In this document: positions 4,701 through 28,335 of the stretch, piece by piece
Numbering within the stretch: position 1 is the stretch's first letter
How the letters are laid out: every line of letters begins with the position of its first letter
From: Epithemia pelagica
Taxonomy: Eukaryota > Protista > Bacillariophyta
Assembly (NCBI GenBank): GCA_946965045.2
Contig: OX337230.1
Span: 2,170,001 to 2,234,000 of the forward strand
Reading direction: 5' to 3'
Length of the DNA: 64,000 nucleotides
Notes under the pieces: model-generated
The model's database searches: none
Told to the model about the DNA's origin: nothing
The model's input: the letters and a program-made list of their open reading frames with translations, nothing else
Made by a program: the position numbers and the translations under genes

Positions 4701-7413
4701 CAAACTGTTTGGTTGACTTGATCCCATAGATATCAGTAACCAGAGTATCTCGACCAACAAAGATTTGTGCGACTTTACCGCCATGGTCAACAGCAGGGGT
4801 GTCAGAGAAAACCGAGTCAGTAGCAACGGGTTCATGACGTCGAGGTATATTAAGGACCGGATTGCGAGCCTTGAAATGTTTCTTGAGGTTGTCGTGGTCA
4901 AAAGTAATGCTACCATTACGTGTAGTGTGCTTGAACGTATCGGCAATAACAGCTTCAGATTGCCAACCAAAGAATGGACGGAACTTCTTCCAGTCATACG
5001 CTTCCTGGTAACGACGGTGGACAGAGGCATGAAGTGTAGGATCATTACCTTCTGCGTCAGCATAGATAGAAAAGAAGGGTGCGTCGTCGGGTCCATGATC
5101 GTATGGGAGATCCAAAAGGAGATTGAGGTTACAAACAACACGATCAGTGTACTCCCCATAGTTGTCATATGGATGGTTCGACATACTACCATCAGTCTTG
5201 ACGTGTTTCCAATCAGGATCATTGTCAGAGGGTGTGGGAGAATACGAATGGTCCAGAACACCAGGATCCCATGTGTCGGGTGACGTGAAGATGATCTGAG
5301 GTAAGGTATCCATGTCATCGTCGCTGGGGATACCCAAGGAGTGGATATAGGCTAACCCATCCTTGATGTGAAGGGGTATGGCACGACCATCAAGTGTAGT
5401 GATGCGTTGTTTACCATCAACTTTAACAGATCGTTCATCAACAGCAAGTCCGAAATGCTCGAATTGACCAGGAGCATGGATAGATAAGCCCTTTCCATAA
5501 TAAGCATATTCATTGAAGATGCCGACAATAGGTCCATCATTGGTCTCAAACTTTGCGGCACATGTGACGACAGGAAGTCCAGTAAGTTCATGGTTATCAA
5601 TACCCACAATAGTGATATGGCGGCCAGTCTTAGAAAGGATGCGCATGTCAGAACCAGCAAGTCCTCCATTAGCACCACGATCAATCAATTGATTCCCTGG
5701 TAAAGTAGATTTCCTGGAAAACAGATAGCGTGGAACATGTCCTGCTTGTTTATGCATGTTGGCTTTGAAAGTAACCTTCTTGCTTGTCTTGGACTTGGCG
5801 TTAGAAAGAACACTAGTCAGGTCAGTTGCCGGGTGATTGATATCAGTCGTCATGGCTTGGTTGATAAATTGTGTAACCGGATCTGAATCATCTGAATGCT
5901 CAGGGACTACGCCAGGTGAGTCGTCATCAGATGCAACTTGGTTGGGGTCAGGATCAGGTTCCGGATCAATGTCGAGGGCATGTGTTTGCACTGTCCTCGG
6001 TGTTGTTGATGAAGGTGCTTGAATCATCTTGTTATACTCAATGATCAACTTGCGATCTTCTTCAGAAAGTTTGAACCATAGGTCACGCGGTAGACTAACC
6101 TTGGACGAAGAGGATGGAGATTCAGATGTCGCTTTGGTGTTGTGGACATGATACTCCATATCATCTTGTGAGGTTATGTCAGCATCTGTATCTTGGCCAT
6201 ATAGTGATTCATGTTGTTTGACATGTCGACGGCGACTATGAACAGATGACTGGGTTGCTTGATCATGGTCATAAGCTGCGTCTAGAAGGAGACGAAAGTA
6301 TGATTGATAGCAAAGGGATTTTGCACCGGATTTGGTGTTCACCACATTATCCAAGATCTTGACTCGGCGGAGATCAGGTACCTTTTCTACAGCTTACATG
6401 AGGAAGGTCATCCTGGTATGATCAGGGATGCGATCAGACAATGTCACTAAATTGTCTAGCAAACGTAGCTGCTCTTGAAAGTGTAGAAGAAATTGACGTG
6501 TTGTTCCGCGCCATGTGTCGTCAAGACGTAGATTGGAAATGTAGTTGGTTAAGCGGAGGACTTCTCGCTTTGCTAGGTCGGATTCGGTATGCAAAGAGTG
6601 TAACTTCTGCAATACGGCACGCGCATCTTCATCATGTTCATGTTCACGTACATAGGCTCGACCTTGGTCAGTCTGAATGATACGGACAAGAACGGAGTAA
6701 AGAAATACTTGTTGCTCTTGAAAAAGTTCTTCGGCATACTCATCATCATGGGGTGGTGTGTATTTGAAATTCAGAACGTTGGATAGGCCTTGAGCCTTAG
6801 CTGTAGTCTTGAATACACGCCAGAATGAATCGTAGTATCGTTCATCCTTGAATACCTCATATGCAGTTGCGTCGCGCTTAGTTCCCTTTCTGAATGCTGT
6901 AAGGTCTTGTTGAGATTGGGATGCGGCAGTAACTGTGCTGACAGATTTCACAGATGACGGTGACTTCATTGGCGAGACTGGGACTTGGCTAGGTGGTCCC
7001 TTAGAGAAATCTGTGTTGATCCTCCAAGTGTTGAACTCTTTCCTCGTTAGGTTCATCCAGTCGCTATTGGATAGCTCGTCTTGAATTTCATTGGTCTTGT
7101 ATGTGGCCCAATAAGCCAAGAGCTTGATCTGCTGTCTTGTGGGGCCTTGTAGATCATGTGTCTGTTTGTTGACCTTGTATTGTGTCAGTTCCTTCATGGA
7201 TTCCTCGGTATTAGTTTGCATATACGAGATAACATGGGTAATGTTCTCAAAACCATGGTATTTCATCCACTTCATTAAGTAGTCGGCCCTTTCTTTGGTG
7301 AAGAATTGGCAGACAGTAAATATGATGTGGTCGAATAGGTCTGTGTCCGAGACATTGTCTTGGTTATCTTCTCCCTTAGGAGTCGTAGGTGTCTTGGGTG
7401 ATTGAGGATCCAT
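1726..7413 (-). CDS. Copia Gag-Pol polyprotein, one reading frame with a single in-frame TAA at 6394-6396
   Basis: ORFs 6394..7413 and 1726..6354 share a frame. Motifs: protease LIDRGANGG; integrase ATDSVFSD/ISDGG/QNKAENR; RT YIAVYVDDL; RNase H VDANL/YGSEF/GDN/ADILSK. Confidence 0.92.
1732..1740 (-). other. Polypurine tract (TGTGGGGAG on the element strand)
   Basis: Purine-rich tract directly abutting the 3' LTR. Confidence 0.75.
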
Positions 7414-17854: not shown

Positions 17855-18923
17855 GCCCGGGCCGTCTTTCTATGCCATCCTCTGAATACTGAGTTGATTG
17901 ACGTTCGAGTGAAGGAAGCCCACAGGCCTTATTGGTATTTGAAAGAGGAGTGGCCGGAGGGTTTCGGTTGTGGCAAAAAAAGGATGCTTGACGTATTACG
18001 ACAGGGTCATCTGGTTTGTTGTTTTTACTTTGTTGAAGGCTTGAATTGAGAGTGTCTTGGTCCAATGAGTAGAGGCTTTGGAGAGCCGGCGCCTTCGTAG
18101 AGTCATCGTGGGTAGTATTGGTGAGAGCCTTGTGGTCGGGGTTGGAGGTGCGGGTAGCCATGATGGATGTAATCGTCCTCACTAGTTTGCCTCCGTGGTG
18201 GCTCTGTGGAGGTGAAATGCAGTTTGTATCAGAGTCGAGAAATTGGCGATTTGGGGCCCTCGCGCCGTGGGGGTGACTAAGGGAATGCACTTAAAAAGTG
18301 CGACTGACCGGGTCGCCCCATGCTTGGGGGTAGCCCGATAATATACCCCCTAAGGGCTGGGGATACCGATCCATGTACATCTAAGTAGGCTCAGTACATT
18401 AACCTACGTAGTACTATTTTCGTCTGTGTAAGAAGTGGGGCGGATGGTCACACCGAGTCGCACGTCGTAAACTTGCCACCGATAGAAAAGGTGCAATCCG
18501 GAAGCCATCATTCGACAATGATGGAAGTCATCACCCCCATGGCAATAACTTCCTGAACAATTGAGCCTACCTGAATCACTTTTACAATAAGAATCTTTAC
18601 TACTAGAGCAACTTTGCTTTCACTTTGATTCAGGCACCCTTGAAAAATGAATGAGTTAGGGCGGTCGTTCGATTTCATCACTGCAGAAAAATGAGCGTAC
18701 CTTTTCAGCCAACTTGGCAAATCTTCTGTAATTTCAGACAACAATTTCAAAGGTAGAGGCAAAGGACTTACGGTGGTGGGATGTTTATGCGATGCATGGG
18801 TGAATGCATACGGTGTCACCGGATCTCGCCACTTCTCGATGACTGCGCAACTTCGCACCCTACTATAATTTCCATAGTCTTTCTAGTACTGTTTCTACAC
18901 ACCTCCTACGTGACTACTTCACC

Positions 18924-21640
18924 ATGGTCAACCGCCGCTCACAGCGGCCCTCCTCAACTGCCTCTCGGCAATCTCCTTCGTCGACACCATCAGCGTCTTC
19001 CCAGGCTCGAATGACGACCTTTTTCCGTCCGGCTGGATCCCCTGCAACCACTGGCCCCGTTAACCCTTCCTCTCGGCACGCGGCGGCAGCGTCGAATGCA
19101 TCCCTAGCGGACACCACCACTGTTGCCTCTAGTTCGACTGGCTCGATTACGTCAAGGTCCGCCAGGTTGTCGGGTTTGGATGATCACAACACCATGACGA
19201 CGCCCCATCCTGCCCAAGTGCCTTTACCAGACTCCTCCCAAGCTTCGGACGGTGGCAGTACATCTACGGCCCTTTCCTCGCGCTCTTCCCTTCGAGATGT
19301 TGGACACCGGCCTCGCGGTCAAGGCCCTGGCCGCGGTGGCCGGGCGCCGATCACTGCTTCCCGCAGCAGCGGACGTTCTGCTTCGTCGCGTCGTCGCCAG
19401 CGTAATCGGACCCGACGGTCCGGGCGATCCAGGTCCCAATCGACACATGAGGCCGACCCGCCTCCGGTAGATGTACCGATGCCGGACGTGGAGGTAGTGG
19501 CAATTTCTCCGGCACCGGCTTTGGGTTTGAATGCCACGGCAAACACGGACGCGGCTCCCCCGACAGCTCGTGCTGCGGTGGCAGTTCCGTCCCCAGCCCA
19601 GACTTCTATCGAATCACCTCAGCGCCAGTTCCAATCCACGCTACAATCGGAACTTACAGATTTGCAGCGCCAACAAGGTACCCCCTCCAGGACAACCACC
19701 ACGCCTACTCCGATTCGGCAGCACCCTTCCCCGACATCGGCGCGGACTTCGAACCGCGGCCACTCGCCCTCCACATCCACCATCCAGGAGGCAGACGACG
19801 AAACGGTAGCTCGGGACAACGCGACGGGACCCTTCGTTCACATCTTCGTCAATCAACCGGTCGAGACACCACAAGGGCCGACCCCTGGCCAGTTCGGTAT
19901 TGCCACGACGCCCTCCATCTCGGGCCGCTTCTCCCATCCTTCAGGCCGGTCGGCCTCTGGCTCGACGCGCCAGGATGCGAACCGCCCCATCCGACTGGCC
20001 CCGGCTCAACATGTGACGGCACGGTATGAAATTCGGGTGAATGTTCCGCCTTCCTCGGCTCCGGACGACGAACTACGCACGGCGCTTGTCAACTTCTTCA
20101 CCAAGTTGCAGGAAGCTGACCCGTCCCTGGTGTTGTACCCGTGGGCCGAACGCGACAACCGCGACGATCAGAATGGCTCCCGGCCTTTTCGCTCTATCTC
20201 CGCTCCTACCGGGATTCCAGTGGATCTTGCGGCGATCAAGCGCTACTTCCCTCGAGTCATCCCTAAAGCCACTGGGGGATTCGTCTACCCCTCGGTTTGG
20301 TGTGGCCACACCAAACCGTTTCGAGAGATCGTTTCGCATCTGCAGGGGTGGTTCCAAGGGGAGAGGCACGGTTTTTGGAACCGTCAGCTCCAGTGTGAGA
20401 GTACTTTGATAGTGGGTTGGGGACTTTATTCGACGCAAACCATTCACGCCCCTACCCTGCGGGCTGCCCTCTCTGCTGAATTGGGATATGAGGTGGGTAT
20501 CCGCTGGAGAACGATTAGTACGGGCCAATCGGGCACGATTCCCGCCAATCAACTCGCAAAGGCCTTGCACTTTGAGGTCGATCGTCGGCATAAATCTGAT
20601 GCCAAACGTCGCTTAGCTGCGATTTACGATCGACAGGCCGAGGATTTTCCGCTGGGGATCAAGATGAGACTTGTTTGGCGCCTACACGATCTCATGAACG
20701 TCCACACACGAGCTAAGGTCGCTGCCCTCCGGCTGCGCCAGTTGCAATTTTGTCAAGCGATGGTTAGCATGAGGACCTGGGAGATACACGACATCGATTT
20801 GGTGGACGACGACTCCGGGTTGTCCTTGCGCAATCGACTGATGGAGCTCAAGAGTCAAAGTGGTCATCGCCTATTCCACACCGTTGACCCCAGCCACATC
20901 GAGGGAGCGGTGCAATTTTGCTTCCACCCGGACAGGGAAGACGAGGCACGCACGATGATCCTAGCCTTGGTCCCTTACCTTCGGTGGAAGGTGTCCCAAG
21001 TTGATCCCCCCCTCCCCGATCGTGAACGGGAGATTTTGCTCTCCCGTACAGTTTATCGGCACTTCAGTCAGGATGCCCTCGAACGGGCCATCGGAGCTAC
21101 CTGGAACCCGGTCACGATGACGGTTGACTCGCCCGCTGATTCTTATAGCGCTTGGGTCCACGATATGGGCGATGCAGAATTGGACTGCTCCAAATTCGGT
21201 GACGGCTCTGGGACGGTGGCAATCACTCCTTCCCCTCACAGTATCGTTCGCACGACGCGGAGGCTGACACGGATAGCGTCTCGACCCTCCCCCAGGGTAC
21301 ATCGATCGCATCCACGGTCACCGGCGGATCGGTACGGTCGCACGGTTCCTCCTTGGCGTCCCGCTCCTCAGCCCACGCCTTCCGTCCCCCTCCGGCACCT
21401 AATCCCCGTTCGGTAGCTACTTCCCAAACCTCGTCTTCACTTGGCTCTTTGTCCTCCCCTGATCCCATGGTGGCCCATCTTACACAATCTCTTCAATCTG
21501 TAACCCAGTTCCTTTCCACGTTGCCTCCCAACGATACAACAGCGGCTTTGCGCGCGCACTTACTTTCTCTGCCCACGGCACCAACTTCCCCTAATGCTTC
21601 CTCCCCGCCGGCACCGTCGCCGGCGGGGCCGCAGCATTAA
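18924..21640 (+). pseudogene. LINE ORF1 (~900 aa, low-complexity N-terminus), one frameshift near 21235
   Basis: The 830-aa ORF shifts to QYRSHDAEAD..., which is in frame with ORF 21353..21640. Confidence 0.75.
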
Positions 21641-21668
21641 TCCCCACGCTCCGGTCCGGGTGCCCGCT

Positions 21669-24600
21669 ATGCCTATACCCGTGACCACCGAGGAGCCAGT
21701 GCCAAGGGCGTGGAAGTCCCCCGCACGTGACCAGGCCCGAGATATGTTTGGACTTTCGTCTGGGTCACTCCGGGAGGATTGTTGGGGCGATCCCATGGCA
21801 GAGGAACCTCCTGACACTACCCTACGGGTTGCAACCATCAACGTGGGAGGACTTCCCACCCAAGCCAACCACCCCAAATACCAGTCTCTTCAAGCTTTTG
21901 CTCTGAGCAACGACGTCGACATCCTCTGTCTCACTGAAGTGAACGTCGCCTGGCAACACGTGGAGGAATCGGCTCATGTCTCCCAGATTGTGCGCCCATG
22001 GTTCCGTTCTACATTTTGCCGTACCGCCTGGTATAAAGCTTTCCCAAGTGAATCTCCCCGTCAACCCGGTGGAGTAGCTCTCCTCATTCGCGGCGCCCAT
22101 GCAGGACGCGTGATGCAGAGTGGTCAAGATGAGTCCGGCCTTGGATGGTGGGTCTGGGCCCGCCTACGGGGCCCCCGAGGGCAGTCTCTCTTAGTAGTCT
22201 GTGCTTATCGCCCCGTGTACCACCCTAGAGATCTCTATTCTGTCTAGAATCAGCAACAGTCCTTCTTCGACAGTCTCACACCGCCACGCTTTACGGATCC
22301 TCGAAAAGCGTTTCTGGATGATCTTTCCACTTTCCTCGCTACGGCGTTGCAAAATGGAGATCATATCCTCGTGGGTCTAGATGCAAATGAACCATTATCT
22401 CAGCCCTCCAACCCCGTCTCTGCCACGTTCTCCCAGATCAGCCTCCATGACGCAATCTTAACAAGACATGGACATGAACTTGCTCCATCCACCCACCAAC
22501 GTGGCTCTGCCCCGATCGACGGCCTCTTCGTTTCTGCCGGTCTGGAACACTTGGCGACGGGCTACTTGCCCTTCGGCTCAGTCGCAGGCGATCATCGTCC
22601 GTTATGGATTGACATACACCTTCCCTCCGTATTCGGCGGCACCACGTCCGAATGCTCCGCTGCCATCCCCATATCTACCGCACGACGACTCCAGTGCGCC
22701 GACCCGCGCGTGGTCCAGCGTTACAACAAGGTTCTTCACCAGTTCTATCAAGAACACGATCTGGCGACACGGGTTTTCCGACTAGAGGTGGACATCTCGC
22801 AAAGGCCATGGTCTCCGGCCCTTGCGGCGGAATGGGAGGCGGTCCACGCTCTTCGCCTCGCGGGCATCCAGCTGGCTGAGTCCAAATGCCGCCGTCTCCG
22901 CACCGGGGCCCTTCCCTGGTCCCCGCAGTTGGGACGCGCTCTACTCCTGCATCGCTACTGGGATCGGCTGCTTCACCGCGCCAAAGGCTACAAGGTCAGT
23001 TGGAGGTATCTCTGTCGGCTGAGCAGGAAACTGGGCCAGACCATTCCTACGGAACTTCGGGTTGAGGATTTACGCCCACAAGCAGACGCCGCATCGGAAG
23101 CGTATAAAAATCTCCGACGCGACGCCAACTCCCAGAGAACGTCCTATCTTGCTCAGTTGGCGCAGGCCCGCGCCGATGCAGGTCTTGAATCACAAGCGGC
23201 CGCAGTGCGAGTGATGGCTCAACGGGAGAGACAACGGCGTGATGCCCGCCTGCTCAGATCAATTTACAAAGCTGGCTCACGCCGCGGGTTGGATCGTGTG
23301 GAGATACCAGTGGGTGACGGCGAATGGTTGGACGGCGAATGGACGGGAGAGTGGCGCGAAGTCACCAACAAACACGATATCGAAAAAGGCTGCCTCCAAG
23401 AAAATGATCGACGGTTCAGACAGGCCACAGGCACCGATCTGGTTACGCCTACGGCTGTGGAGTGCCTGGGACCAACCGGCTGTTCCGCAGCCGCTACGCA
23501 TCTACTCAAGACGGGCGAAATTCCGTGGTCTTTACAAGAGTCGATTTCCCATGCCGCCTCTTCGTATTTGGCACACCACCGTATCCCCTCGGTCCTCTCT
23601 CTTAGCTCCTCCGCTAATTTGGATTTTCATACCCCGGCGTATGCAACTGGCTGGGAGAAGATGCGGGAACACACGGCCTCGGGCAAATCGGGCCTGCATT
23701 TTGGGCACTTCATTGCTCAGGCTCGCGACCCTCTCCTGTGTGCCGTCGACGCTGCAATGGCTTGGATCCCGACTCAGGTCGGATATGTTCCGAAGCGCTG
23801 GACCTACGGACTCAACGTCATGTTAGAGAAAAAACCAGGCGTGGCCAAAGTATCAAAGCTTCGAACAATATTGCTTTATGAAGCAGATTACAATCAGAAT
23901 AATAAAATCATGGGACGGGCCATGATGGCTTACGCGGAGAAACACAACCTGCTCGCCCCTGAACAATACGGGAGTCGCAAGCATCACTCCGCCATCTATC
24001 AGGGACTCAACAAGGTCCTCACATTCGACCTTTTCCGACAGCAACGCCGTTCGGGGGCCCTGTGTTCCAATGATGCAAAATCGTGTTACGATCGCATCGG
24101 GCACTCTTCGGCGGGCTTGGCGATGCGGCGCTGTGGCATTCCCATCCCCATGGTCGAGGCCTCGCTCCGTCCCATTCAAGCGCTCAAGCATTACATTCGG
24201 ACGACATTTGGAGATTCCACTGTCTTCTTCTCTGCTGATGGCCATGACCTTCCGGTGCAGGGTATCGGGCAAGGAAATGGGGGCGGCCCGGCCATTTGGG
24301 CTGTGGTCAGCACCCCCATAATCAATTCAATGCGTCAACGCGGCTATGGGCTGTTTCTCCGTCTCCCCTTGAGTGGGGATCAGTACATTTTCGTGGGCTA
24401 CGCCTTCGTCGATGATACCGACTTGGTGGTGAACCTGACTCCGTCCGAACAAGCCCAGCCCCAGCCTTCTCGAATTACACGCGTATTTGAACGAATGCAG
24501 GAGAGTATCACCTTTTGGGAGGCTTCCCTCCGTGCCTCGGGTGGGGCCTTGGTGCCTCAAAAATGCCATTGGTATCTCATTGATCACTCTTGGCGGAATG

Positions 24601-27496
24601 GCAAGTGGAGTCTTGTGTCGCCGTCGGAAGTACCACACGCGTTGCGCACGCGGTCCCCCTCGGAACGATGGGTCGATATTGAAATCCTGTCGCCCCACGA
24701 GGCTCGGCGCACCCTCGGCATTCGCGCTGCCCCTGATGGCAACATGAAGGCGGAGATCGAGTATTTGTCGTCCCAAGTCAAGCAATGGACCCAACTCACC
24801 GTGGCACGTCGTCTTCCACATCACCTTGTCTGGTTGTCCTTGACCACAGGGATTTTGAAGAAATTGGCTTACCCACTCCCACCTACGACTTTATCCGAGG
24901 ACGACTGCCGCCACATCATGCACCCTTTGCTGCAGGTGGGTCTCAGTTGTTCTCACATTGTACGGAGTTTTCCGAGGGCTGCCGTCTATGGTCCGGCCGC
25001 ATTGGGCGGTTTAAATCTTCCCAACCTTTACACGGAACAAGGGATTGAACACATTCGGGCATTGATCCAATTTGGCCATGATTCTTCCATCACCGGTTAT
25101 CTTCTCCGGGCATCGCTCCAAGCTCTGCAACTGGAATTAGGTCTACCTGGCAATCCGTTTGCGTATGACGCTGTGACCTGGTCCGACTGTGCCACCTCTT
25201 CCTGGGTGGTAAATACATGGCAATTTTGCTCCCGTTACGGCATCTCCATCCCCAAGCTCCCGCGTGGCAGTCTGCCCCTCCTTAGAGGAGGCGACCAATA
25301 TCTGATGGAAACCTTTTACCGGTCCGGCTTTCGACACCCGGCTACTCTTCGCTCCTTGAACCAGTGTCGGTTGTACCTTCGGGCAGTGTCGCTCGCGGAT
25401 ATTCTCTCCGCTGATGGCTCCCGCATCCTCGAGGATGCCTGGACTGGGGCCAATGGCTCTTGTGGTCGACGTGCAGCGTGGGACTGGCCTCGTGCACCCC
25501 CCCCCCCATCACGCATTGGATTGGTCATTATGGCAGCGTGCCTTGTCTACGTCCTTGGGCGCATCTTCTCGGTTTCGGCGCGTCACTGCGGTGGTCTCCA
25601 CCTGGATCTTCCCGCACGCTCTCCCGGCTGCGGCTCTTTATTCTTCTCGGTGGAATCGGTTGTACCTTCCATTGGATGACCGTGATTGTGTCGTTCCAAC
25701 GAGCTGGCAGGAGTTTCGCGCCCTGCCTCGACAGAGGGGCCGCTCCCGTTTCCTTCCCACGGACAGTCTGGTAGGCTTTGGGACGCTATCCCTGGCCGGC
25801 CCGGTCTATGTCGTGGACGTCACGGTGCCTGTGCCTTTGGTCAGGCCTAGGGACGGGCAGGTGATCATGTGGTCTCAGGATACCACCGCCCTGACGTTCT
25901 CGTTAGGCGGTCCGGTGCTTCCCCCGCCGGCCCCGTTGGCTGATTTCGAAGCTCGGTTGTCACCTGTTGCTCAAGTGTGGTTCCTATCGGCCTCCACCGC
26001 CGGCCTCTCGCCCCTTATCTCGGCGCTGGCCGCTGGGACTCTGGAGGCGGTGTCCGATGGTTCTGCTCGGGCTCAAATTGATGGCACGTGTGCGTGGTGT
26101 TACCACCGATGCCGACACTCTTGAATCGATATCTGCTGGCGCCAGGGTACCAGGTCCACCGGACAGTCAAAATTCCTTCCGGAGTGAGTTGTACGGGATC
26201 TTTGGCATCGTCTTGGCAGTACGCAACTTAGTCCGCCTGGGGAATCTACCCAGTGGGGAAGTTACGGTGGCCTCTGACAGTCTGAGTGTCTTGAATCGAG
26301 TTTTCCGCTCCACGCGTCCAGCCGCTGTGACCGATAAAAGCTGGGAGCTGTTGTCGGCCGTGCAGAACCTTCTGCTGGCGATGCCCCAAGTCACTTGGTT
26401 TCCACGCCACGTGCGCGGCCATCAAGACACTACGGGCCGACAGAATCTGGATCGTTGGGAATTGCGCAACGTCCTTATGGACGAGCGGGCGTCGCAAGTC
26501 TATGAGCTGATACCTCCTGATGAACTGCCTCCATCTCCCTTTGGCAAATTATCTCCCTTGGTTCTTAATGAGCAGGTGCTTGTTTCGGATTTCGCCACAG
26601 GTCTCTGCAGACATATTAACGGCCCGCCTCTGTTGGACCTCCTAGCCCGCCGCGGTAAATTCGGCACAGCGTCCGCCACATCGGTCGACTGGGAAGCCTT
26701 TTCCTTGGCCGCCAATATGCAACCACAGAACCGACGCCATTGGGTCGTTAAGGCCTCGCTCAACCGCTCTGCGGTCGGTGTCAAAATGCTCCGTCGAAGA
26801 CAGTGGAAGGATGCCTCCTGTCCGCGGTGTCATCACCCGCTGGAAACAGCCCTTCACGTCTACCAATGCCCCCATGTGGAAGTCTCTGTATTGTGGGACC
26901 AGGCCTTGACTGCTCTCTCCCGCTGGTTTGATCGCTCCTTTACTCACCCAACAATCGCTTCTTGTATCCTTAATTCTCTCCGCGCTTGGCGCCACGGCCA
27001 GCCCCCACCTTCTCTTCACACAACTGTTCCCTCTCTTCCCACCGCTCTAGCGGCACAACGTCTCCTCGGCTGGTCTTCCGCCCTGGAGGGTTATTGGTCT
27101 CCTGCGTGGACGGAGGCTCAAGAGTCTTACTTTCGCTTCTTGGGTCGCCGTAACTCGGGACGGCGATGGTTAGCGGCCCTAATTGTCCAGCTGTGGAATG
27201 TCTCGTGGGATCTTTGGGAACATAGGAATGGACATCAGGTCCGCCGGACTCAGGCCCAGGAGCGCGCCGCAGTGCAATTGGACCTCCAACAGGAGTATGC
27301 ACGCGGCCCCCTAGGCCTTCCTGCGCCCGTTCAACGTCTGTTTCTCCGTCCCTTGGCCGCTCGGTATCTGGATGCTATCGGGACCCAACGACGGTTCCTG
27401 CTCCGGATCCAGGCGGCCCGACGCCGTACCAGATATCGGGCCCTTGCGGAGCAACGTCGGCTCTTCCGCCGGTTCTTCCGCTCTGGCCACTCCTAA
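21669..27496 (+). pseudogene. LINE ORF2: AP endonuclease, RT, RNase H, CCHC; one TAG and two frameshifts
   Basis: APE: TINVGG, LTEVN, GLDANE, IDGLF, GDHRPL. RT: LYEADYN, NDAKSCYDRI, GQGNGGGP, AFVDDTD. RNase H: SDGSA, RSELYG, ASDS, HVRGHQD. Knuckle: CPRC..H..C. Lesions: TAG 22245-22247, C11 run 25497-25507, shift near 26100. Confidence 0.9.
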
Positions 27497-28335
27497 GCCT
27501 TTGTGGTTTGTCTCACTCCCTTTCTGTATCCATGTTTTGTGCCTTCCTATGTCGTTTCATCCTATTCATGTGTCGACCCCGGCCTTGGAATGCTTCATCC
27601 GGTCGTGACGGGGCGACGTTAAAGCCTCGGGCAGTCTAGTTTAACAAAGACTAATCATCGAGTTGTATTTGTATTTGTCACCAGATCTCGCCATCATTGT
27701 CGAGCGTTTTTGCATTTTTTTGAAATTCCGACCATTTCCGGCGTGACGTGTACTATCTGATTTTATGTACTCTACGTAGCTTTTGTACTGAGCCTACTTA
27801 GATGTACATGGATCGGTATCCCCAGCCCTTACTATGTGTAGGTGTAGGAGGAGTAGCTTTGGGGCTTGGGGGACAAAGACCATGACCATGACTTCACAGC
27901 TCACAGCAGATACTATGGGCGACAACAATATAATATTATAAAACGCGCTGATGGCGGATGTAGGTTTGGGTTTGAGGTTTGAGGGGTTTGGTTTCGAGTT
28001 TGAGCGGTTGATCCTGTAGCCTGTAGCCTGGAAATCTGGGACTGGGACGGGACAAAGTCGAAGACCCGTGTCGACCGTCTTTCTCGCTCTCTTTGCGGTC
28101 GTCTTACACGGTCTGGGTGTCCGTTCTAAGTTCTGAGACAACGGGGCTGCCACAACCCACAACCCCAGCTTTCTGCTTTTGCGATCGAATCGGATGGACA
28201 CTGAAGACGGTGAAATTGGAGATGGTAGAATGGTATCTGACATCATGTGGAGCAAGTAGCAGTACGGACAATTATTGACAGTTAAAACCGTCTCATATCT
28301 CCCATACTATTATGCCATCCCATTCGATCCGGTCT

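Follow-up and report, generated by a model that had tools for sequence, protein, structure and literature searches.

The locus at positions 18351-27831 of the window, that is, of the whole 64,000-nt stretch of Epithemia pelagica DNA that was analysed, is most probably (at roughly 85%) a chance nested insertion of a worn-out LINE into one copy of a common MITE. It is ordinary transposon nesting, and it is no new composite mobile element. What the locus is made of, how many copies there are, which sites are empty and where else the LINE has inserted were directly observed. There is no sign of a preference of the LINE for the MITE, nor of any movement of the 9.5-kb composite.

The original prediction described an 8.8-kb LINE with its own target duplication within a MITE flanked by TA and bounded by terminal inverted repeats (TIRs), and this description held, the LINE being 8,844 bp long. 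Three options were offered for its origin: chance nesting, Tx1-like targeting of the MITE, and a mobile composite. The first has survived; the other two fail on a target that is filled once in 61 cases and on junctions that are single-copy. The candidate new system is removed, and the importance of the locus is mainly one of annotation. That is, two separate repeats, a TA-flanked MITE and a low-copy LINE with APE and RT domains, are present here, not one element.

The MITE and its family

When the LINE and one copy of its target duplication were subtracted, a MITE of 619 bp was obtained, which corresponds to 615 bp plus a TA per end. In the alignment to the uninterrupted 619-bp copies, the left part (18351-18831, plus strand) covers family positions 1-481 and the right part (27694-27831, plus strand) positions 482-619. 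The left part begins with a TA (18351-18352), presumably one copy of the target-site duplication of the MITE, and continues with a TIR of 46 nt (18353-18398, plus strand); the right part closes with the partner TIR (27784-27829) and the second TA (27830-27831). Counted with the palindromic TA, the two ends (18351-18398 and 27784-27831) form a pair of 48 nt that is 100% complementary, in agreement with the exact 46-bp inverted repeats and TA duplication predicted. The predicted size of about 615 bp was likewise borne out, as 22 genomic copies without an insert match the reconstructed MITE over its full length (1-619), with identities of 89-99%.

Each of these 22 copies runs from TAAGGGC to GCCCTTA, and their flanks are unrelated, which is consistent with a TA duplication. 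Neither TTAA nor a direct repeat of 3 bp was found at these copies; the borders of every one of them read TA...TA, and it is from these borders that the TA target-site duplication is taken. For the MITE itself no empty pre-insertion site was found. Searches with the TIR pattern and with the left arm together placed the family at no fewer than 62 loci in the genome. The element is short, non-coding and multicopy and has perfect 48-nt TIRs, as a MITE does, and its only ORF gave no match in Pfam. By its ends it is putatively Stowaway/Tc1-mariner-like, with TA as the sole character that would place it in this superfamily.

Perfect 48-nt ends were present in 17 of 23 MITE copies, some of which are about 10% diverged. 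The MITE of the window carries 5 private changes in 619 bp (0.8% divergence), and with this number of changes the 96 nt of TIR would be expected to stay unchanged about half the time. Perfect ends are the norm of the family, and the perfect TIRs are therefore no sign of recent movement in this genome. The earlier argument, in which perfect TIRs around a decayed LINE were taken to fit a late movement of the composite, does not stand, since copies have such ends whatever their age.

A subterminal inverted 13-mer had also been pointed out. It is present, with its right arm at 27691-27703 and not at 27693-27705. We rejected it as a functional subterminal site: no more than 12 of 23 copies have an exact left arm, and the right arm is not specially conserved, lying in a block of 380 bp that is 97-100% conserved throughout. 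The insertion point of the LINE falls within the best-conserved part of the MITE.

The family makes up only about 0.06% of the genome, and at this share a hit by one low-copy LINE group is improbable a priori, which counts against chance nesting. The pairing of this LINE with this MITE was chosen after the fact among many cases of a transposon within a transposon.

The LINE and its insertion

The LINE is bordered by a direct repeat, TGTCACCGGATCTCGCCA on the left (18814-18831, plus strand) and TGTCACCAGATCTCGCCA on the right (27676-27693, plus strand). The two copies are equal at 17 of 18 bases and, by the consensus of the empty targets, the right one carries a single G-to-A change. From these borders the LINE is 18832-27675 on the plus strand, or 8,844 bp. 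It is a defective full-length non-LTR retrotransposon with APE and RT. Its 5' end, CTTCTCGATGACTG, is common to three relatives. Its 3' UTR (27497-27675, plus strand) consists of a hairpin, GGCAGTCTAG..AGACTAATC, and a TGTATT-repeat tail without poly(A), and both hairpin and tail are common to five other tails. Members of the group have no LTRs or TIRs of their own, four insertions show duplications of 13-18 bp, and one copy is 5'-truncated, as is characteristic of LINEs.

ORF1 (18924-21416, plus strand) is open, encodes 830 aa and matched no Pfam family. ORF2 lies on the same strand in four segments. The first (21594-22247) holds the first part of the APE domain (Exo_endo_phos, E 6.4e-7 in Pfam) and ends in a premature TAG at 22245-22247, a point at which the open relative reads through. 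The second (22248-25502) continues in the same frame with the rest of the APE domain and the RT, and is 63% identical to the open relative L045. The third (25501-26100) is in another frame after a frameshift near 25501, as detected by tblastn with the open frame of L045, and the C-terminal segment (26099-27496), also placed by tblastn, is in a third frame after a frameshift near 26100; it gave a weak zf-RVT-like match (E 0.042) below the Pfam cut-off. Of four lesions predicted in the LINE, these three in ORF2 were confirmed by comparison with the open relative and the fourth was not.

With an apurinic-like endonuclease at the N-terminus of ORF2 and a reverse transcriptase behind it, this is an APE-type LINE. 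The RT was not detected in the long ORF2 pieces by Pfam or by phmmer against PDB, and was recovered only from the cut-out 23640-25100, which matched RVT_1 above the gathering score (E 2.4e-8). The RT core occupies about this interval, with FVDD at 24405, and the translation shows RT motifs. RVT_1 was also matched by 16 of the 17 LINE family members. The profile of these 17 sequences gave only a marginal match in PDB, to the thumb of R2Bm (E about 1); neither profile nor single-sequence searches of PDB matched L1 ORF2p. In the protein Atlas the matches were confined to diatom clusters and RVT_1 clusters. In open relatives ORF2 reaches about 2,000 aa (e.g., a frame of 2,009 aa at C13:2380950), and the family is notable for this unusual length.

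If the locus arose by chance nesting, the events may have been as follows. A MITE copy would have inserted at a TA adjoining another repeat. Later, the full-length, low-copy LINE would have entered positions 464-481 of the MITE through target-primed reverse transcription. A nick was probably made in the bottom strand just before TGT, which matches the TGTATT tail of the LINE and may have provided microhomology for priming, and a cut of the top strand 17-18 bp downstream would have produced the target duplication. The LINE would then have decayed, with a stop and two frameshifts arising in ORF2 and a single substitution in the target duplication.

Empty targets, other insertions and competing explanations

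The 28-nt target of the LINE, GTCACCGGATCTCGCCA^TCATTGTCGAG (^, insertion point), occurs uninterrupted 60 more times in the genome, so that one of 61 targets is filled. The 22 full MITE copies align straight over the LINE junction and are thus empty sites. A search for a second copy of either MITE/LINE junction found none in the genome, each being single-copy.

Other termini of the LINE group represent 4-5 independent insertions. Two long relatives lie at C13:2376101-2385030, with the target duplication TGCTGATTCCCTGTTT, and at C13:3274357-3283176, with the duplication ATTGAGGGGCAAGA; the terminus at C17:3169543 duplicates the flank of the latter. The copy at C11:1687097-1689295 is 98% identical to the LINE of the window, is 5'-truncated at LINE position 6445 and has the duplication GATATTCTCACCA. 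C5:901103 is a LINE 5' end only. The three readable duplications are unrelated sequences, and the flanks of these five termini (C13 twice, C17, C5 and C11) showed no similarity to the MITE. A sixth tail, at C7:3084698, has an unplaced end position and stands outside this comparison. We also considered the C11 target as a diverged MITE and rejected this, its local alignment score being 11 against 11.8 +/- 1.2 for shuffles.

The original prediction called for reading the flanks of other LINE copies, counting empty and filled MITEs and seeking filled composites at other TA sites, and it named unrelated targets with only one filled MITE as the result that would speak against an undescribed system. 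This is what was found, one MITE being filled by this LINE.

Reading of the TIR matches covered the two long pairs and some short stretches; about 12 further matches are solo TIRs. Both long pairs are MITEs filled by other elements, and no transposase-bearing partner was found in them: one is interrupted near position 506-516 by an RVT_2 (Copia) element of 7.15 kb, the other near position 234 by an element of 1.7 kb with TIRs of 48 bp. These two cases point to general nesting in transposon-rich DNA. Two second-tier LINE copies, on C8 and C6, were considered as nested in MITEs and rejected, since distances of 0.8 and 2.3 kb separate them from other copies of the MITE; both families simply share transposon-dense DNA. 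Strictly, the solo TIR matches could still include another MITE split by a very large insert, but such a MITE would not hold this LINE subfamily because all ends of the subfamily are accounted for.

Among the competing explanations, an insertion directed by a short motif fares best, though we consider it unlikely. The youngest LINE subfamily would prefer TCTC(G/A)CCA^TCA(T/A)T (^, top-strand break), and the MITE family, with the motif in all 60 or more copies, would be its largest target pool. At their 5' junctions the copies of the window and of C11 both show the motif in one register, agreeing at 11 of 13 bases, and the C11 site is otherwise without similarity to the MITE (anchored permutation, p about 0.004, for n=2 insertions). 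However, the motif was spotted after the fact among several comparisons, the end of the C11 duplication can be placed only to within 2 nt, the motif is missing from the three older relatives whose junctions can be read, and 60 perfect targets stand empty. Specificity in target-primed reverse transcription is usually set by the first nick, that of the bottom strand, and the bottom-strand nick sites of the two insertions differ apart from a tail-like triplet. That the subfamily recognises the motif, with the MITE as its main landing pad in an early, low-efficiency relation like that of Tx1L and Tx1D in a diatom, seems to us somewhat more doubtful still. The motif is the one weak lead left.

An obligate targeting of the MITE, as Tx1L of Xenopus targets Tx1D, has in its favour that one LINE copy sits in the best-conserved part of the MITE. 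We regard it as very improbable, and for this assembly it is refuted by the single filled target among 61 and by the 4-5 independent insertions whose inspected flanks lie outside MITEs.

Hardly credible is a composite in which the MITE ends moved the whole 9.5-kb unit by cut-and-paste, with the LINE as cargo, after its decay had begun: the perfect ends and the TA duplication around the unit fit it and nothing further does, both junctions occur at a single site, perfect ends are normal even in old MITE copies, and the divergence of the MITE (0.8%) is similar to that of the LINE (about 2% relative to the C11 copy, and 1 base of 18 between its duplication copies), so that late movement is unnecessary to explain the ends.

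Comparison with known systems

The MITE resembles those of the Stowaway/Tc1-mariner type in its size of 615 bp, its long perfect TIRs, the TA on both sides in all copies, its tens of copies and its lack of coding capacity. It differs in that the two long TIR pairs inspected yielded no transposase-bearing partner.

Tx1 of Xenopus laevis is a Tx1L LINE inside a Tx1D DNA element, for which Garrett et al. 1989 and Christensen et al. 2000 are cited in the literature. The present locus is similar in having a two-ORF APE-type LINE inside an inverted-repeat element, with a long target duplication (17-18 bp here). In contrast, many Tx1D copies carry Tx1L at one and the same site, whereas here the MITE of the window alone, one target of 61, holds the LINE, whose other copies lie at different loci.

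With stringent-type LINEs our LINE shares a 3' hairpin that is conserved, a tail of TGTATT/TGCATT repeats in place of poly(A), and microhomology between tail and target at its 3' junction. It differs from them in its very long ORF2 and in its RT, which only just qualifies as RVT_1 in Pfam and whose best PDB match has an E of about 1.

Nested insertions of a LINE inside a MITE or DNA transposon are found in most transposon-rich eukaryotic genomes. As in such ordinary nesting, a younger LINE with a target duplication of its own splits an older MITE, paralogous copies of the MITE allow the empty site to be reconstructed, and other MITE copies hold other inserts. Nothing of substance sets our locus apart from these cases, and its only oddity is the small size of the host (619 bp) beside a full-length guest.

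Structure of the split MITE and its family

A repeat search of the window detected a single outstanding inverted pair (18351-18398 versus 27784-27831; 48 nt, 100% complementary), which corresponds to 46 nt plus a palindromic TA. The same search detected a direct repeat, with TGTCACCGGATCTCGCCA at 18814-18831 and TGTCACCAGATCTCGCCA at 27676-27693. These two copies of the LINE target differ at 1 of 18 bases and enclose 8,844 bp (18832-27675). The anatomy originally predicted, an inverted-repeat MITE split by a LINE, was confirmed. The predicted inverted 13-mer also exists, but its right arm lies at 27691-27703. To the left of the MITE, 17951-18333 belongs to another repeat family (at least 10 copies, 82-99% identity) whose matches end about 17 bp short of the MITE's TA, at about 18333; the right flank is single-copy. 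The surroundings of the MITE are transposon-dense.

Joining 18351-18831 to 27694-27831 reconstructed a MITE of 619 bp. In the genome (60.5 Mb, 23 contigs), a search with the left arm gave 40 scored full-length matches among 143 candidates, and a 36-nt TIR pattern allowing up to 3 mismatches gave 66 matches; combined, they define at least 62 MITE loci. When the reconstructed MITE was compared with the fetched loci by BLAST, 22 copies were uninterrupted over positions 1-619, at 89-99% identity. Because these copies align across the junction, the empty site is proven, and so is the LINE's target duplication of 17-18 bp. All MITE copies are edged by TAAGGGC...GCCCTTA and have unrelated flanks, meaning that the MITE duplicates TA, and not TTAA or a 3-bp direct repeat. 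By this TA duplication only, the MITE is classed as Stowaway/Tc1-mariner-like; no transposase partner for it was found among the inspected loci. Among 23 aligned copies, a 380-bp block at MITE positions 181-560 (window 18531-18831 and 27694-27772) was 97-100% conserved, and conservation fell to 77-91% at positions 81-180. The family looks mosaic, its subfamilies differing chiefly in the left arm and in a paired G/T-to-C/A change at both ends.

Coding content, decay and age of the LINE

ORF1 of the LINE (18924-21416) is open and encodes 830 aa, which is unusually long for a LINE; it had no Pfam match. ORF2 spans 21594 to 27496 in pieces. The two ORFs share a frame, and two stops lying within about 90 nt separate them. 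The first ORF2 piece matched Exo_endo_phos in Pfam (E 6.4e-7), and a reverse transcriptase is recognisable in the ORF2 translation. Pfam hmmscan of the 1,110-aa piece (22347-25679) returned nothing even at E 10, whereas 23640-25100 scanned alone, as a 487-aa cut, matched RVT_1 at E 2.4e-8 (34.4 bits against a gathering cut-off of 29.6). Long pieces of this LINE family should therefore be scanned domain by domain. The LINE belongs to the APE-type non-LTR class. Its neighbours in the Atlas were unnamed diatom clusters and RVT_1 clusters, and the best match in a PDB search was no better than E about 1. An RTE-like non-LTR family is mentioned for T. pseudonana in diatom surveys (PMC2806351).

Comparison with a relative having an open frame across the region showed that ORF2 is broken at three points, by a TAG stop in frame at 22245-22247 and by frameshifts at about 25501 and about 26100. 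Thus three of the four lesions originally reported were confirmed, and the fourth was not found. The contrast between this decay and the perfect TIRs had been read as compatible with movement of the whole unit after the LINE began to decay. This argument carries no weight, since perfect 48-nt ends occur in 17 of 23 MITE copies, including some at about 10% divergence from the window copy. Moreover, the 619 bp of the window MITE carry 5 private changes relative to the young-subfamily consensus, so the absence of any change in the 96 nt of its ends is roughly a coin-flip. The LINE differs from its copy on contig C11 by about 2%. The LINE and the window MITE are similar in age.

Occupancy of the LINE target in the genome

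The uninterrupted 28-nt target, GTCACCGGATCTCGCCA followed directly by TCATTGTCGAG, occurs 61 times in the genome (56 perfect). One occurrence is the window's own right-hand copy, leaving 60 empty targets and one filled. We counted LINE ends using the first and last 500 nt, the last 70 nt and the conserved 3' hairpin pattern as queries; the LINE is low-copy, with a total of six tails and four 5' ends. Its group, graded by RT protein identity, contains 3 or 4 relatives in the 74-82% range, roughly a dozen in the 65-68% range and a large number near 30%. Outside the window, copies lie at C13:2376101-2385030 (duplication TGCTGATTCCCTGTTT), C13:3274357-3283176 (duplication ATTGAGGGGCAAGA), C17:3169543, C5:901103 (5' end only) and C11:1687097-1689295 (98% identical to the window copy, 5'-truncated at LINE position 6445, duplication GATATTCTCACCA). 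The sixth tail, at C7:3084698, belongs to an element whose end was not placed. The copies at C17:3169543 (stretch L034) and C13:3274357 (L035), which are on separate contigs, share the same tail and at least 45 nt of 3' flank, which indicates that the segment was duplicated or that the insertion lies in another repeat, and not that the LINE inserted twice. The flanks of the two C13 copies and of those on C17, C5 and C11 had no similarity to the MITE, and the genome contained no second MITE/LINE junction. In two cases a second-tier LINE copy is close to another MITE copy, at a distance of 0.8 kb in one and 2.3 kb in the other, and in neither is it inside the MITE.

Spacing was unusual for just two TIR pairs. 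At C6:2006131-2013881, the MITE is filled at position about 506-516 by a 7.15-kb element of Copia type (C6:2006627-2013777, L073:728-7878; RVT_2 E 2e-17), in which two open ORFs encode 497 and 1,314 aa. At C17:2859873-2862197, it is filled at position about 234 by a 1.7-kb non-coding element (C17:2860242-2861982, L072:643-2383) that has 48-bp TIRs (98%) of its own and, internally, 25/77-nt tandem repeats. Three of about 62 MITE copies are thus filled, each at a different position and by a different kind of element, as general nesting predicts. Taken together, the nested structure is real, and we put at roughly 85% the ordinary explanation that a dead LINE landed by chance inside a single copy of a common MITE.

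Insertion of the LINE and comparison with Tx1

Tails of the LINE group end in TGTATT or TGCATT repeats and lack poly(A), and each LINE duplication begins with a triplet that resembles the tail (TGT, TGC or GAT-ATT). All six tails (window 27630-27675, C7:3084698, C11:1687106, C13:2384982, C13:3274366 and C17:3169552) keep a 3' hairpin, GGCAGTCTAG and AGACTAATC separated by 6-14 nt, followed by GAGTTG and the repeat tail. The hairpin is conserved among relatives with proteins about 25% different and is probably the recognition element for the RT. These features are consistent with target-primed reverse transcription, in which the RNA tail would pair with the bottom strand at its nick and the insertion would be completed by a staggered cut in the top strand, 13-18 bp downstream.

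The LINE might instead have been directed to the MITE by a short motif. The two youngest insertions, in the window (18814-18831 and 27676-27699) and on C11 (L032:1430-1448 with L076:399-415), have in common TCTC[G/A]CCA followed by TCA[T/A]T, matching at 11 of 13 positions in register at the 5' junction, and an anchored permutation against random window sites gave p of about 0.004 for n=2. However, the motif was chosen after the fact, the end of the C11 duplication is ambiguous by 2 nt, and older LINE relatives do not have it. We therefore consider motif-directed insertion improbable; the shared junction sequence, which we keep as a lead, could be either a target motif or coincidental.

The original prediction of a Tx1-like, targeted or mobile composite is contradicted by the single filled target, the MITE-free flanks of the compared LINE copies and the single junctions, the very outcome that it had named as its refutation. 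We tested both defining features of Tx1, namely that the same site is filled in many host copies and that copies of the LINE are confined to that site. The LINE described here differs from Tx1 in both respects.
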